The position numbers were made by a program, and so were the translations under genes. A stretch of DNA of 51,140 nt, from positions 191,425,045 to 191,476,184 of the forward strand of contig NC_068982.1 of assembly GCF_001194135.2 (NCBI RefSeq), written 5' to 3'. Under the pieces are notes generated by a model. That model made no database searches and had not been told where the DNA came from. It saw nothing but the letters and a program-made list of their open reading frames with translations. Each line of letters opens with the position of its first letter. Within the stretch, counting starts at the first letter, position 1. Source of the DNA: Octopus bimaculoides. Taxonomy: Eukaryota. Shown here piece after piece: positions 14,475 through 49,930 of this stretch.

Positions 14475-15134
14475 AGGTGACCGGATCCTTTTTGCCAAAC
14501 TGCTGGTCATGGAGATGTAAACAAACCAACATTGGTTGCCAAGAAGTGAAAGACAAACACAAATACACAAACACACACACACGTGCGCACACACACATGC
14601 TTGCATGCACACACACACACACACACACATGCTGAGCTTCAATACAGTTTCTATCTACCAAATTCTCTCACATGGCATTGGTCAGTTTGGCATGAAAATA
14701 GAAAACACTTGTCCAGAGCAGAGTGCAACAGGACAGACCCCAAAAGCATTTTGTTCTGAAACAAAGTCCTCAACTACAGGAAACGTTATTCCATTCTAAA
14801 TCAGAAATATTCCTTGATGGGTGAGAGCTGGTGTGGTGGTGTTCATGCCTTTCCTATTACAAGATCATCATCAGTGTGAATGAAATGATTCAAACATTGT
14901 CTACTGAAAATGGTCGAATGAATGTAGCAGCTTCCAGGTGGTCGGTTGACCTGCAGAAATGAGTAGTCAAACATCCCTCAACTTATATTGTCTTGTTAAA
15001 GAAGGGCACGTTGAAAAGTATAGTCATAGGTACTCAATGGTTAGGGTAAGACAAACAGGATGGTCACGGGTGGAAAGCCTTTGATTAGAGGGTTGCTCAA
15101 TCCAGCTTGAAAAATTAAAGAGCCAATGTTTAGA

Positions 15135-15287
15135 TTTTAATTTTATGGCCGAACAAGCCTCTTGCTGCTCTGAGTTTCACCTGTGGGTCTCCACGAGCTT
15201 CAGGCAGATGATGACTTACCTGAAGATCCTGTGCACCCACAGGTGGAACTCCTGAACAACAAGAGACTGACTCAACCAAAATAAAAA
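15135..15287 (-). other. Long RNA hairpin / inverted repeat with G·U-biased stem
   Basis: 15146-15170 pairs with 15254-15278 (17 WC, 7 G·U, 1 mismatch on minus-strand RNA). 15172-15203 pairs with 15220-15251 (26/32 WC). 16-nt loop. Confidence 0.85.
15220..15251 (-). CDS. Candidate 32-nt microexon GAGTTCCACCTGTGGGTGCACAGGATCTTCAG (EFHLWVHRIF+AG if phase 0)
   Basis: Pyrimidine-rich acceptor tctcttgttgttcag| and perfect donor CAG|GTAAGT. Lies inside a long hairpin (see findings). Confidence 0.45.
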
Positions 15288-15361
15288 TAGTGTCAATCTT
15301 TCCTATGGTATTGAGTACTCTTTCTTCCAACAACCAACACTAAACATGTGTATGTGTATGC

Positions 15362-15414
<53 letters not shown>

Positions 15415-17837
15415 GGGGGGAAGGTCAATGTTTCTAAGAATGTGAAAAACATTTTATTCTCCTGAAACAAGGGGTCAATTTTAATAGGATGGGAAACCTC
15501 ATTCCATCCCGAGAAGGAATGGTTGTCACCCACTGACTCTCTCTCTTCCTCTATACACACACTCTTTTCTCTCTCTCCATCTTTCCCACACGATGTCCTA
15601 CTTCTCATTTAAATTCTAAGTACTGGGAAGGGTTTAGAAATGGTTCACAACTGATGTAGATAGAGCGAGGGTAGGGCAGACAGCATGCCTTCACCATCTG
15701 TCATTAACTTCAGGATTAATAAAGTTGGCTGCGTAATTAACATGTCACTGGGTGTAATTAATAAACTTTACAAGAAATAAATGGAATCTCTTGGTATAAG
15801 AAGGGCGTTGTCTATTGAATCTAACCCTATTGTTGTTGGGTATCCTTGATCAAGTAGACCTATGGTTAAAGACGCCTTTCTAACTATGACCACCAGCTTT
15901 TAGAGATATTCTGGACTATCAAAAGTAGTGGTTGTCAGTCTTTTTAATGCCCGGGCTAGATACAAAACCTGGATTTTTTTAGGGGGCTCAAAGCAAAAAA
16001 TAAAAGTAAAACAGAACTCAATCGAAAAATTTATATTTCTAGAGGGAAGACCGTTCGAAGGATGCTTGAGGGTCGCATGCTGCCCTGACAGCCGCTGATC
16101 CAAAGCGCTTTTCCTTTCTTTTCAAGACTGCATGGTGCGATTTGTGAGATTTGGCTACTATTTCTAACAGTTAAAGGGACCGTGTAGACTCGCCATTAGG
16201 AACCAAAATCTTGCGTCTATTAACGAATGTTAATTACGATGAAGCATCTTAGTTCAGTGCTTGACAAATATTATAAACGATGAGCCTCTACGTGTACCGG
16301 ACGATATGCTAGAAATACAGCTGAATATCATTTAAAGAACACCTTACAGTCTTAAAAAAAAAGAGGAAACATTGGATAATATAGTCCTAGATACATTGCG
16401 GAACCTCTTTTATGGTAAGGGTTATTTTCAGAACTGATGGCCAGTTAAAATATACGAAAGAAAGAAAAAAATCAGGAAGTTTTTATTTTTAATAAATTGC
16501 AAAAAGCCAAGCGACACGTTGGTAGAATCGTTAGTGCGTCGGACAAAATGTTTAGTGTCATTTTTTGCGAAAGTTTACATCCCGAGATAAAATTCTGCCG
16601 AAGTCGACTTTCATCCTTTCAGGATCGATAAGATAATTCGATGCAAAAGACTGACCACTTTCCACCAAAAACTGTATTATTATTATTATTATTATTAAAA
16701 GGGCACAACCGTTAGAAAGTCAGAAAAAACAGTTGCGGTATTTGTTCTAGTTTAAATCCCGCCGGAGTCACTTGGTCTTTCATTCCTCCAGGGTCAATNN
16801 NNNNNNNNNNNNNNNNNNNNNNNNNNNNNNNNNNNNNNNNNNNNNNNNNNNNNNNNNNNNNNNNNNNNNNNNNNNNNNNNNNNNNNNNNNNNNNNNNNNN
16901 NNNNNNNNNNNNNNNNNNNNNNNNNNNNNNNNNNNNNNNNNNNNNNNNNNNNNNNNNNNNNNNNNNNNNNNNNNNNNNNNNNNNNNNNNNNNNNNNNNNN
17001 NNNNNNNNNNNNNNNNNNNNNNNNNNNNNNNNNNNNNNNNNNNNNNNNNNNNNNNNNNNNNNNNNNNNNNNNNNNNNNNNNNNNNNNNNNNNNNNNNNNN
17101 NNNNNNNNNNNNNNNNNNNNNNNNNNNNNNNNNNNNNNNNNNNNNNNNNNNNNNNNNNNNNNNNNNNNNNNNNNNNNNNNNNNNNNNNNNNNNNNNNNNN
17201 NNNNNNNNNNNNNNNNNNNNNNNNNNNNNNNNNNNNNNNNNNNNNNNNNNNNNNNNNNNNNNNNNNNNNNNNNNNNNNNNNNNNNNNNNNNNNNNNNNNN
17301 NNNNNNNNNNNNNNNNNNNNNNNNNNNNNNNNNNNNNNNNNNNNNNNNNNNNNNNNNNNNNNNNNNNNNNNNNNNNNNNNNNNNNNNNNNNNNNNNNNNN
17401 NNNNNNNNNNNNNNNNNNNNNNNNNNNNNNNNNNNNNNNNNNNNNNNNNNNNNNNNNNNNNNNNNNNNNNNNNNNNNNNNNNNNNNNNNNNNNNNNNNNN
17501 NNNNNNNNNNNNNNNNNNNNNNNNNNNNGAAATGGTGACGATAGCTATTCGTTAAAGTACGGAAGAGCAAAAGAATTAAAATATTTATTCACACGCAACA
17601 TTAGCAGCAAGAAGGCAATTTCTCCCGATTATTTTTAACTCAATTAACTTTTTTTAGTAGTTAAGAGGGGGATAGCAACCAGAATGTTTCGCGTTCGTGC
17701 CTTCCCCCCTCCTCTCCCCCCCCAAAAAAAAAATTACAGTTGTACGTAAACTGAAATAGTTACCACTGGAAATAAAAACTCGTCATTTCAGTTAACCCGT
17801 AACATTGTATCCAGGTTTAAGCATTTTTGAGAGATAG

Positions 17838-18567: not shown

Positions 18568-19838
18568 TAGGGTCATCCCATAAATAATGCAGTTTTTCAG
18601 TTGCATGAACTAAAAGTTGGAGGGGTACTGGTTAAACTACCTGCATCAACTTGCTATAAAAGCAGGTAGTAATTTTACCTGGTGCTTATTCTTAGTGCAA
18701 GTTTTGAAGAGTGCAGTTCGATTTTAACAGTTATTTTTTCAAGGCTATAATGGAAGGGACAAAGGAGCATAATCAGCATGTTTTTCTGTAGGAGTTCAAT
18801 GAAGGCCACAACGCAACAGAAAGTGTGAAGAATATTAATGCAGTATATGAGGATCGGGCAATAAGCAAAAGCCAGTGTCAACAGTGGTTCCAGAAATTCC
18901 AAGCTGGAAACTACAGCCTAGAAGACGAGACTCGTCTTGGAAGATCTGTAGAGCTCGACGAGGACGTCTTGCAAACCCTGGTGGAACAAAATCCCATCGT
19001 AACTGTTGAGGAACTAGCAGAGAACTATTCATCGACACCAGCATGCCATCGGAAAAGTCAGCAAATTGTGTCAATGGGTTCCTCACAAACTTTCCGAGTC
19101 TAATCACATGTAGTGAGTGAATGTGTTCTCTTCTTTGCTGTCGCGTCTCACGAATGAACTTTTTTTGGACTGAATAGTGACTGGTGACGAGAAATGGGTT
19201 CTCTATAAAAATGTCAAGCGCCAAAGACAGCGAGTAAGGGAAAAAAGAAACACTGGCATCTCAGGCTAAAGAAGGTCTTCACCCACATAAGGTGTTGTTA
19301 TCTGTGTTGTGGGATATGAACAGTTTAGTCCACTTTGAACTTTTAAACTCAAACCAAACGATAACAAAGATCTACTTTGAGGAGCATAAACAGCTTAAGT
19401 CAGTGCTTGAAAAAAAAAAAAAACCGACCCTCTTTGGTTTCAAGACGAAAGATGTTCTCCCATCAGGAAAAAGCTCAGCCACATACAGTGAGGATGACAT
19501 TTCAAAGACTGGAGCAGTTTGAATGGGCAACAATGACCCATCCATCATATTCGCCGGACACTGCCCCATCTGATTATCATTTATTCCGCAGTCTTCAAAA
19601 ACATTTAAACCGAAAAGATATGAATTCTGTAGACGAGGTCAGAACAGTAGGGGATGGGGAGTATTTTTTGTCACGGACAAGTAAATTTTGGAAGAGGGGT
19701 CTGGCAAGTCTACCGGACAAATGGAAGAGCATTGCAGAAAATGAAGGAGAGTATAGTTTAAATTAAAAAAGAACTTTATCTTAATTTTGAAAAATAAAAT
19801 AAGTACTAAAAAACCGCATTATTTATGGGATGACCCAA
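18568..19838 (+). mobile_element. Full-length but decayed mariner (DD34D) transposon
   Basis: ~28-bp TIRs (TAGGGTCATCCCATAAATAATGCAGTTTT / AAAACCGCATTATTTATGGGATGACCCAA) with TA on both sides. Transposase remnants: HTH (18825-19030), WVPH (19075-19086), IVTGDEKWVLY, HQEKAQPH, HPSYSPDTAPSDYHLF. Contains stops and frameshifts. Confidence 0.95.
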
Positions 19839-20160
19839 TATAATCTTTTTACTGGTTTCAGTCATTAGACTGCGGCCATGCTGGGGCACCGCCTTGAAGC
19901 ATTTTTAGTCGAACGAATCGACTCCAGTACTTGCTTTTTTTTATAATAACAAAATCTTCTGTCAGTTGTTCGTTACTTCTTCACGCAACCTGAGAAATAC
20001 ATTTTCATTCACTCACTCAACAGCGACCATAAGCAGCATTTGACAAAACGCCAAACACACAGCTGGAGGTCTTAATTTGTTGTTTTCAGCAGCTTCCAGC
20101 CTCACAGTTTCCTATTGGAGTTTTGAATTTGATATCTTGTGAGCGTTTCTTCAGACTCAC

Positions 20161-25399: not shown

Positions 25400-26755
25400 C
25401 AAGAGTGGACACGCATATCACTCAGCCGCCTTCAGCATTCTGCGATTAATCGAGCTGCAAAACGGTCTTTTATAGGAGACAATAGGAACATTCGAGAAAA
25501 CCATATCACGCCACAGCCTCACGCTGAATGGTCAATTATTAGACCGATCACATGAAACTATGGTGAAGCCAAATATGGGGATTTATTGTACCATTGTGAA
25601 GCTAAGTGGTTAAGTAAGGCCCAAATGCTTAAGCGATTTTAACAACTGAAGGAAGAAGTGAAAATTCTTATGAATGTTAAAGGTGTTCCTATTATAGAAC
25701 TGGAAGATAAAAAGTTTCAAAGTGACTTAGCATTTTTAGTAGATATAGCTAGACATTTAAATAATTTGAACTTGAAACTACACGGCTCCAATCAGTTAAC
25801 AACCAGTTTGCTTCTTCATGTCAAAAGTTTTGAATCGATGCTTCATTTATTTGTCTCACAATTGAAAAGAAAGTGCTTCACACATTTTCCGAAATTGAGC
25901 GAACAAAATCTGACGAATGTGAAAGTCTTTTGAAGAAATTTGAAAGTAGATTTGAAGAAATACAAGATAAAATCGATCTACGTGTTTTTGAAACACCTTT
26001 TGATATGTGTCCTGAGGAAGCTCCGGATTCCTTACAATTAGAATTGATTTGCAGTCGGAGAACTTAATAAAATCGAAATATAGTAATTTGTCTTTATTGG
26101 ACTTCTACAAACGTATCAATCCTGAGAAATTCTCTGCTTTACATAAAAATGCCTTGAAATTCGTATCTCAATTTTCGACAACTTGTGAGCAGTTTTTTTC
26201 CAAATTGAATTATGCAAAAAATCTTCTTCATACCAGACTTACTAACGAAAACCTGAGTAATAAACTAAGAATAGCAGTTTCTTCAAAGTCATTGATATTC
26301 CTAAACTTTCAAAGAAAGAAATATTTTTAAAGTAGTTTCATCCTTCTCACTAAACAAAGTCAAATTTTAAAGTTAAGGTTGATTAGCTTTGATAAAATTA
26401 TCACTCGGATAAATTTGTTCAAATATGTCATTTACACATAATTCTATTTAGGTATTAATCTAATGTTTCAAAATTAAATTTGGTCTGTGCTTGACTTCAG
26501 ATTTCTCCAACATCAGGATAGGAACATTTTGAAAAATATAGAATACCTCGTAAATAATATAAACATCCTAAATTCAGTGGCGGCGTTAATGAAGATGTTA
26601 CGCGTTAGTTTGATGTTAAACTTATCTTTATTAATGTACATCGAATTATACATAGATATATACACAGATACAAGAACCAGAAGTTGTGATCCGCCTGCGG
26701 AGCTTTTTTCTTTGGAAACTTTTGCCCACCGTACTAAAAAGTCTCCCCCACCCTG
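25400..26755 (+). mobile_element. Decayed hAT (Charlie/SPIN-like) transposon, 3' half
   Basis: Translated remnants YGDLLYHCEAKWLSK (EVRWLSRG-type), DLAFLVDIARHLNNLNLKLHG and FSTT-CEQFFSKLNYAK..RLTNENL (hAT dimerisation domain). Right end AAGTCTCCCCCACCCTG. Confidence 0.85.
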
Positions 26756-31891: not shown

Positions 31892-32107
31892 AGACTGTGG
31901 CTATGCTGGGGCACCGCCTTGAAGGAATTTTTTGTACTTATTTTTTTAAAGCCTGGTTCTTATTCTATCGGTCTCCTTTGCCGAACCGCTAAGTTATGGG
32001 GACGTAGACACCCACACCAATTGTCAAGCAGTGGTGGTGGGGGGAACAAACACAGACACAATGACACATTAATACATCTTATACAAATACAGACACATAT
32101 CCTTTTA

Positions 32108-32677
32108 TTCTTTCACTCGTTTCAGTCTTTTAACTGCGGCCATGTTGGGGCACCAAGGTCATGAGAGGATAGAAAGATAGGATGTTTCCAATGCAGCGCT
32201 CACCCGAGCTTCAGAGTATCTACACTATCGGATTCCAAACTAATCTGGACATTCTTCAGGTATAGATAATCCAGGTTTCACAACGGTAAAACCATAGTGT
32301 GGGTTTAGAGTGACACATCTTCAGACATTGCATGAAAGGAGTTAAAGACGAGCCATTCTAATGTTTAAAACTGCAAATATTACGGAAATTTTCATTTGGA
32401 ACCTTTGCGTAAACTGACGTTGGAAGTAGAAACAGTGGTAACTGACCATTAATGACTTACTTGGTCTTCTTGTTTGTTTTGTATTTTATTCTTCACTAAA
32501 CCCACACTCGGGTTTTACCGTTTTAAAACCCGGATTTCTAGGTTAGTTTGGAATCCGATAGTGTAGATAGCCTGAAGCTCGGGTGAGTGCTGCATTGGAA
32601 ACATCCTACTTTTCTATCCTCCCAGGATTTTGGTGCCCCAAAATGGCCGCCGGCAAATGACTGAAACGAGTGAAAGA
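32108..32677. mobile_element. Foldback/MITE-like element with ~185-bp inverted arms
   Basis: 32108-32310 is the reverse complement of 32493-32677, apart from a ~17-nt indel and scattered substitutions. ~180-nt spacer. TA on the left, TG on the right. Confidence 0.85.
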
Positions 32678-33951
32678 ATGTATGTCTGTATTTAACATCC
32701 TTCTTCTACGCTTGTATGTGTTAGATGGTTTATCAGGATCCGATGGGCCCAAGGACTACATTGTACTCTAATGCCTTCATTGACATAGTTTCTATGGCTA
32801 GATGCCCTTCTCAATGTCAACCGCTTTACAGCGTGTTCTGTGAGCTTGGTTTGTGCCACCAGCACTAATGAGGTCACAATACAGCTTGCAAGAATATAAG
32901 CACCGAAAAAGGTGGCTCTACGCTGGGAGACGAAGTATGAAAGAAAGCGCCAGACCTGGACAGGAATTATGCAGTAGAGAGGGCGGGGAAATCCGACAGG
33001 GTGACTAGGCGGGGCTAGGAAGATATAAAAATAAGGATGATGAGATGTCTGGATGTACCCTCAAGGTATGAGATGGGAAGTGAATGGTTTGGGGGTGCAA
33101 GAAAGTATGGGGGAGTGAAAGATGAGGAATGAGTGAGGGTGAGGAGGTAATACAATGAATACAGAACAAGTGTTGAATGGATAAGTAAGGATGACAGGGG
33201 AGAGTAGGTGACAACTGCAGAGATTGGATAAGGTTAAGGAGTGAAGGAAAAATGTGGTGAAGTTACCAACGTTACATAGGGGAGAAGAGAATAGCAGAAT
33301 AGCAGAATAGCAATGTTGATACAGTTGGCAGGGGGGGGGATGCGAGCGTGTGTACATGTGTATGTGTGTGCGTGCTTGTGTGCGTACGAGTGTGCATATG
33401 ATTACACGCATATTGATGCAGTAAGTTCAGCATGGAGGAATTCCAACCATGTTTCGTGGTTTGCTACCACAACAGCTCCTTTATAGGATCCAGTTAGCTG
33501 AAGACTTCATCGGGAAGAACCACGTCCGGTTTCGGCCCCTACTCCTCTACCGTTTTCGACGTCGCAGGCCCCACCTCTTTTCGGAAGTGTCTTCAGCTCT
33601 GGTGTTGAGTGCATTTCNNNNNNNNNNNNNNNNNNNNNNNNNNNNNNNNNNNNNNNNNNNNNNNNNNNNNNNNNNNNNNNNNNNNNNNNNNNNNNNNNNN
33701 NNNNNNNNNNNNNNNNNNNNNNNNNNNNNNNNNNNNNNNNNNNNNNNNNNNNNNNNNNNNNNNNNNNNNNNNNNNNNNNNNNNNNNNNNNNNNNNNNNNN
33801 NNNNNNNNNNNNNNNNNNNNNNNNNNNNNNNNNNNNNNNNNNNNNNNNNNNNNNNNNNNAAATTCTCTTTAAATACTATTCACCATTGTTATTGCCGAAG
33901 TTTCAGCGATAGAGCTTTAGTTAGAAACAAATTCCTTCTTTACGGGATAAA

Positions 33952-49721: not shown

Positions 49722-49930
49722 TTGTGTGTCTGTGTTTGTCCCCTTCCCCCAACATCGCTTCACAACCGATGCTGGTGTGTTTACGTTCCGTAACTTAGCG
49801 GTTCGGCATAATTGTCCAATAGAATAAGTACTAGGCTTACAAAGAATAAGTCCGGAGTCGATTTGCTCGACTAAAGGCGGTGCTCCAGCATGGCCGCAGT
49901 CAAATGACTGAAACAAGTAAAAGAATAAAA
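49533..49930 (+). mobile_element. SINE family A, full-length reference copy
   Basis: A-box-like GGCTGTGTGGTAA, B-box-like GGTTCAGTCCC, internal (TA)n(TG)n, tail GGTGCTCCAGCATGGCCGCAGTCAAATGACTGAAACAAGTAAAAGAATAAAAGA. Confidence 0.9.

Follow-up and report, generated by a model that had tools for sequence, protein, structure and literature searches.

New hairpins, new miRNA genes among them, are documented to arise in a single step by template switching during replication (PMC10710096; Monttinen, Frilander and Loytynoja). The octopus locus described here resembles the hairpins produced in this way: it is an inverted duplication at one locus, has a short spacer and no transposon hallmarks, and is of a kind that provides an RNA stem-loop immediately. 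At the same time, the published cases mostly have miRNA-sized stems and an origin inferred from outgroup genomes, whereas the present stem spans ~60 bp, its arms have diverged by ~26%, and a template-switch origin is an inference.

Other described systems invite comparison as well. The canonical animal pri-miRNA, as measured by Drosha, has a stem of ~35 bp (three helical turns) and single-stranded basal flanks, and in a mirtron the hairpin ends coincide with those of the intron, so that the stem has the 5' splice site at its 5' foot and the AG at its 3' foot. Like the locus presented here, pri-miRNA hairpins and endo-siRNA loci of the Drosophila hpRNA type are strand-specific, thermodynamically exceptional stem-loops with a small terminal loop; here, however, the stem is almost double that of a pri-miRNA yet falls far short of the hundreds of base pairs typical of hpRNAs, and no Rfam family match was found. 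MITEs and foldback elements are likewise short, almost wholly self-complementary and at home in transposon-rich genomes, but the target-site duplication and the further copies that go with them were not found in 51 kb. Finally, the geometry matches that of duplexes between an exon and an intronic editing complementary sequence, as at the GluA2 Q/R site, and that of stems which sequester a splice site, such as the stem-loop at the donor of MAPT exon 10. Here, too, a segment that looks like an exon is paired with the bases that follow it, and the top of the stem carries a consensus donor. The exons of those systems, however, are established coding exons for which editing or regulated splicing has been demonstrated, whereas the exon here is hypothetical.

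The locus lies in a 51,140-nt stretch of the Octopus bimaculoides genome, the whole of which was analyzed and is referred to below as the window. A first-pass annotation had proposed that minus-strand RNA folds into a hairpin that buries a 32-nt microexon together with its splice signals, and that a one-sided excess of wobble pairs reflects selection on RNA structure. Here, we examine the fold, the history of the two arms and the splice-like motifs, and weigh the explanations that the locus admits.

A stable hairpin on the minus strand

Folding of both strands places a hairpin exactly where it had been annotated. The element is a hairpin-forming inverted repeat, an imperfect palindrome of 133 bases at 15146-15278 (Table 1). 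Minus-strand RNA (15287-15135) reaches a minimum free energy (MFE) of -81.1 kcal/mol, compared with -39.95 +/- 3.87 kcal/mol for 200 dinucleotide-preserving shuffles (z = -10.63, with 0 of 200 as good), whereas plus-strand RNA reaches -58.3 kcal/mol (z = -6.87); the asymmetry between strands that had been claimed is thus borne out. The minus-strand MFE structure contains 53 pairs, 46 of them Watson-Crick and 7 G·U. The fold is autonomous, remaining unaltered when 501 nt are folded, and the upper 68 nt by themselves fold at -39.3 kcal/mol.

To place these values in context, stability was scanned across the window in 150-nt stretches at a step of 30 on both strands. Even off-centre, the hairpin locus scores -75.8 kcal/mol against a background of -28 +/- 10; only a (GT)n/(ACAT)n microsatellite outscores it, and the next non-repeat structures lie at about -58. 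Microsatellites apart, nothing else in the window is therefore as stable as the hairpin, which lies far beyond chance.

Table 1. Coordinates of the hairpin, its parts and the repeat remnants in the window.
Feature	Position	Strand	Basis and remarks
5' arm, 62 nt	15217..15278	-	MFE pair list and ungapped arm alignment; contains the pyrimidine-rich tract, the bulged AG and the putative 32-nt exon
Terminal loop AGUCAUCAUC, 10 nt	15207..15216	-	MFE; identical in the 501-nt fold
3' arm, 61 nt	15146..15206	-	Pair list and arm alignment; supplies the G of 7 of the 8 G·U pairs
AG, putative splice acceptor	15252..15253	-	In a 2x1 asymmetric internal loop facing A15171; P(unpaired) = 1.00 for both bases
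Putative 32-nt exon	15220..15251	-	Pairs at 26/32 positions with 15172-15203; mean P(unpaired) 0.19; coding and homology support absent
GUAAGU, within the window's sole CAGGTAAGT	15214..15219	-	GU paired at the top of the stem, remainder in the loop
Pyrimidine-rich tract AGUCUCUUGUUGUUC	15254..15268	-	Wholly within the outer stem; mean P(unpaired) 0.01
Mos1-type mariner remnant	18825-19766 (18.8-19.8 kb)		HTH_48 and partial Transposase_1 DDE domain (Pfam); split into several ORFs
hAT-superfamily remnant, GTF2IRD2/EPM2AIP1-like	25658-26330		Best protein matches at 24-76% identity
Non-LTR reverse transcriptase fragments	1-320, ~10.3-10.6 kb, ~31.7 kb		Matches with RVT_1, endonuclease and PHD domains at ~50-67% identity
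Interspersed repeat with core TTTCAGTCATTTGACTGCGGCCATGCTGGGGCACC	19856-19890, 32120-32154, 49879-49913, arm 32534-32679	+, +, -, (arm)	At least four copies

Divergence of the arms and the polarity of wobble pairs

Ungapped alignment of the two arms over 61 columns gives 45 Watson-Crick pairs, 8 G·U pairs, 2 C·A mismatches (minus strand) and 6 transversion-type mismatches, along with one indel, the extra base at 15253. The arms have therefore diverged by ~26%, counting 16 substitutions and the one indel. The alignment reproduces both pair counts of the first-pass annotation, namely 24 of 25 positions between 15254-15278 and 15146-15170, 7 of them G·U, and 26 of 32 between 15220-15251 and 15172-15203. 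The first-pass annotation had drawn a 16-nt apex holding the GUAAGU, with the capacity to pair further; in the MFE structure the loop measures 10 nt, and the G and U of the donor are paired (P unpaired 0.00 and 0.02).

The one-sided wobble bias stands in part. In the outer 25-bp stem it is complete, with 7 G·U pairs, one mismatch and not a single C·A. The inner stem, however, holds two positions, 15246/15177 and 15233/15190, that are C·A on the minus strand and G·U on the plus strand, and these favour the plus strand, such that the count for the whole stem is 8 to 2 and not 7 to 0. In 7 of the 8 G·U pairs the polarity is the same, the U coming from the 5' arm and the G from the 3' arm. CpG deamination was considered as their source and rejected, since only 1 of these 7 sites stands in a CpG context. 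The 5' neighbours of the wobble Gs (A, A, G, U, C, G, U) are uninformative with respect to an ADAR-like preference.

Selection or neutral decay

A sign test on the 8-to-2 wobble bias returns p = 0.055 one-sided and 0.11 two-sided. As a neutral null, a perfect palindrome was built from both arms and decayed in 2000 runs, each with 16 substitutions (10 transitions and 6 transversions) placed randomly on either arm, and both strands were folded. The better strand of the simulated hairpins has a mean of -74.4 +/- 6.0 kcal/mol and is at or below -81.1 kcal/mol in 13.6% of runs, so the stability of the hairpin is explicable without selection; it is what an inverted duplication of such age is expected to have, and the asymmetry alone is remarkable. 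In 1.9% of neutral runs (p = 0.019) the two strands differ by 22.8 kcal/mol or more, and a chi-square on the four transition-mismatch types, a test picked after the data were seen, gives p = 0.009. Of the 10 transition differences, 8 are G·U on the minus strand, which is why the plus strand is ~23 kcal/mol weaker.

The asymmetry is thus nominally unusual, and strict neutrality predicts neither the asymmetry nor the polarity of the G·U pairs. Because the asymmetry is reached in only 1.9% of neutral runs, and the stability in 13.6%, selection on RNA structure is suggested, not shown. The case for selection that the first-pass annotation made from the wobble bias accordingly finds weak support. 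An excess of A-to-G changes on the sense strand of transcribed regions is known from mammals, and strand-biased mutation, for example such a transcription-associated A-to-G excess, would explain the asymmetry equally well without selection. The asymmetry points tentatively to the minus strand as the one that matters, through either weak selection on the RNA or a transcription-linked A-to-G bias. Either account, selection or mutation bias, would imply that the minus strand is transcribed.

Splice-like motifs in the hairpin

On the minus strand, splice-like signals stand in the right order: a branch-like UUGAC at about -45, a tract with 10 pyrimidines in 13 positions, CAG|G, and then CAG|GUAAGU, the putative donor motif CAGGUAAGU lying 32 nt downstream of the pyrimidine tract with its AG. 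The acceptor AG (15253-15252) is bulged just as had been annotated, facing a single A and fully unpaired. CAGGTAAGT is present once in the window (both strands, ~102 kb), at the apex of the hairpin; given ~0.4 occurrences expected by chance under uniform composition, a lone occurrence is not significant. At 26 of 32 pairs within a 53-bp hairpin, the putative exon-intron duplex also has the double-stranded length of an ADAR editing duplex (at least ~20-30 bp including the exon).

Signs of a gene were sought around these motifs. The 32-nt putative exon holds no recognisable coding sequence in any of the three frames. For the 67-aa ORF that spans the hairpin, no homolog was found at E <= 10 among 5.8 billion proteins, and neither were homologs found for three more long ORFs elsewhere in the window. 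Exact matches to the 67-aa ORF, to its 101-aa and 90-aa neighbours and to two mariner ORFs are absent from the record. No host-gene Pfam domain was detected within ~5-6 kb of the hairpin on either strand: among all stop-free segments of at least 50 aa from 8.5 to 19.7 kb, the mariner Transposase_1 was the only domain present. Protein homology and Pfam searches of the window ORFs thus revealed no neighbouring exon or host gene around the hairpin. The proposal of a real 32-nt microexon comes down to motif matches, with homolog, Pfam domain and coding signal not found in these searches. Non-coding DNA very commonly contains pseudo-exons with good motifs. From its sequence, 15220-15251 is best read as a putative pseudo-exon, delimited by flanking consensus motifs alone, and the splice-site-like motifs in the hairpin are most simply coincidental.

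Searches for small-RNA and transposon signatures

At the gathering score, no family of Rfam 15 matches anywhere in the window. When 14900-15500 was scanned permissively, the best Rfam match on the hairpin was the plant family MIR2646, at 26 bits against a threshold of 245 bits. The dimensions of a canonical pri-miRNA do not fit, with 61 columns and 53 pairs from 15278/15146 to 15217/15206 and a lower stem that runs ~35 bp past the expected position of the basal junction. A mirtron-like precursor, raised in the first-pass annotation as an alternative, fails on geometry: the order of the splice motifs is inverted relative to intron ends at the base of a stem, the AG (15253-15252) lying within the 5' arm and the GUAAGU (15219-15214) at the apex. 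Two further candidates were set aside. The plus strand carries ACTTACCTG, as a U1 snRNA pseudogene might, and U1 gave no match in the permissive Rfam scan; for a SINE head derived from a tRNA, no tRNA-like sequence is present in the whole window. No hairpin fragments occur in the supplements of PMC9699675, a weak negative as these files contain 8-mer target sites and not miRNA sequences, and 17-18-mers of either arm are without match in the literature searched by sequence.

The first-pass annotation had stated that neither arm resembles any repeat in the window, and this stands: blastn of 14800-15600 and a degenerate arm pattern (up to 3 mismatches) both return only the two arms. The single-locus status of the hairpin is thereby shown within the 51-kb window, and the arm pattern has zero matches in IMG/VR viral contigs and in JGI metagenome contigs. 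The flanks, ...GATTTTAATTTTA|T and A|AAATAAAAATAG, contain no target-site duplication (read by eye, with no flanking direct repeat listed); TTAA is present on the left flank only, TA is asymmetric, and the pairing fades into A/T-rich flanks. A faint resemblance to part of the arm core, in effect an incomplete third copy, is found at 15055-15080, where CACGGGTGGAAAGCCT matches CACAGGTGGAACTCCT at 81% over 16 nt next to an adjoining 12-nt inverted match; the similarity is probably due to chance.

Discussion

Overall, we favour a reading of the hairpin as an imperfect inverted duplication at a single locus, with arms of ~62 nt on either side of a 10-nt spacer, embedded in transposon- and microsatellite-rich non-coding DNA, and we would give this reading about an even chance of being right. 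In this scenario, a one-step fold-back or replication template switch, the most likely origin, would have created a near-perfect palindrome whose arms then diverged by ~26%, and any minus-strand transcript through the locus is predicted to fold into an autonomous hairpin of ~60 bp. If the region is transcribed, as part of an intron or by intergenic read-through, the hairpin may serve as a generic dsRNA substrate for ADAR or Dicer, and a dedicated role would not be needed to explain it. The reading has a price. It leaves the 22.8 kcal/mol asymmetry as an event seen in just 1.9% of neutral runs, it does not account for a G·U polarity of 7 in 8 (p = 0.009, by a test picked post hoc) or for an outer stem with 7 G·U pairs and zero C·A, and it must accept as a coincidence that the window's one perfect 9-mer donor consensus falls exactly at the apex. 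A transposon origin would recast the same palindrome as a copy of a non-autonomous DNA transposon of the MITE or foldback type, the hairpin being a by-product of long terminal inverted repeats. As in many MITEs, the entire element is palindromic with a very short spacer, DNA-transposon and retroelement remnants abound in the window, and 51 kb is compatible with a family of thousands of copies in a gigabase genome; nonetheless, a second copy of the arms is absent from the window even at 3 mismatches, the flanks lack a target-site duplication, and an arm difference of ~26% would make this an old copy if it is a MITE at all. On balance, we find the transposon origin quite unlikely.

Alternatively, the minus strand might encode a lineage-specific small-RNA precursor, either a young miRNA-like gene or a hairpin-RNA/endo-siRNA locus, in which Dicer, alone or together with Drosha, would release two or three duplexes of 21-23 nt from the ~60-bp stem. 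This is an unlikely reading, but one with definite attractions: the stem is long and nearly unbroken, with a 10-nt loop and a strongly folding upper part (68 nt at -39.3 kcal/mol), the fold holds in its 501-nt context, the asymmetry favours one transcript, new miRNAs are known from one-step inverted duplications (PMC10710096), and a gain of many novel miRNA families has been reported for octopuses (PMC9699675). It has to contend with 61 columns and 53 pairs where Drosha measures ~35 bp with single-stranded flanks, and with the negative searches of Rfam families, of the PMC9699675 supplements (a weak test, limited to 8-mer target sites) and, for 17-18-mers of the arms, of the literature. The model put forward in the first-pass annotation, a real frame-shifting 32-nt microexon of a minus-strand gene whose tract, body and donor are sequestered in the hairpin and whose inclusion would depend on opening of the helix or on ADAR editing of the stem or the bulged acceptor A, is very unlikely in our estimation. 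It would make sense of near-consensus splice signals in the correct order with the window's only CAG|GUAAGU as donor, of a tract that is fully paired (P unpaired 0.01) beside an AG that is fully exposed (1.00), and of a strand asymmetry at p ~0.02; the U residues of the G·U pairs lie in the pyrimidine tract and upstream of it, which would fit joint selection for U-richness and pairing. Against this, no homolog, Pfam domain or neighbouring exon was found, pseudo-exons with good motifs are common and ~0.4 CAGGTAAGT are expected per window, and an exon of 32 nt shifts the frame. Its most elaborate form seems more improbable still: an evolved minus-strand RNA switch in which the hairpin would hide the tract, body and donor of a frame-shifting "poison" microexon and expose only the AG, a helicase or ADAR editing of the stem or acceptor A would decide inclusion, and the one-polarity G·U pairs would record selection that acted jointly on pairing and on the U-richness of the tract. 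Explanations other than an inverted duplication, a small-RNA locus, a MITE and a microexon share the remainder.

If the locus is only an orphan inverted duplication, as we favour, it is one hairpin among many of its type in a large genome rich in repeats, and its main value is as a worked example of how wobble counts by themselves overstate selection at the RNA level when they are not set beside the mismatches that favour the opposite strand and a neutral-decay null. If, on the other hand, a spliced microexon, discrete small RNAs or compensatory changes that keep the pairing in related species prove to be real, it would offer a clean single-locus case of a structured RNA element born from one duplication.

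Surroundings of the hairpin

The window is part of a gapped draft scaffold, with 13 runs of N of 10-850 bases, and the analysis is blind to the 4554 bases that these runs total. GC content is ~21-44% per 2-kb bin, the lowest bins containing assembly gaps, and microsatellites are dense throughout. One of them, a self-pairing (GT)n(AT)n tract at 15347-15406, lies ~60 nt upstream of the hairpin in the minus sense; sub-threshold Rfam matches to mir-297, mir-466 and mir-1277 at this tract were rejected as low-complexity artefacts.

When five long, non-obvious ORFs of the window were submitted as a chimeric protein query, the only matches were hAT/GTF2IRD2-like, at 24-76% identity and from assorted animals, and a chimeric query of the transposon ORFs returned reverse transcriptases and transposases of assorted origin at ~50-67% identity. 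One weak match among those to window ORFs is to an Octopus sinensis protein (E = 8.6e-4), and no near-identical annotated protein was found for the ORFs queried.

Microsatellites often follow the interspersed repeat with core TTTCAGTCATTTGACTGCGGCCATGCTGGGGCACC; a tRNA-like head for it was sought in the window and not found, and its core has no match in the literature searched by sequence. Two oppositely oriented copies of this one repeat form a second inverted repeat, with arms of 146 nt (32107-32252 and 32534-32679) that are 88% complementary and 281 nt apart. Used as a comparison, this inverted repeat has unbiased wobble positions, with the plus strand favoured at 6 and the minus strand at 4. 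If transcribed, its arms would form a dsRNA much longer than the hairpin at 15146-15278.
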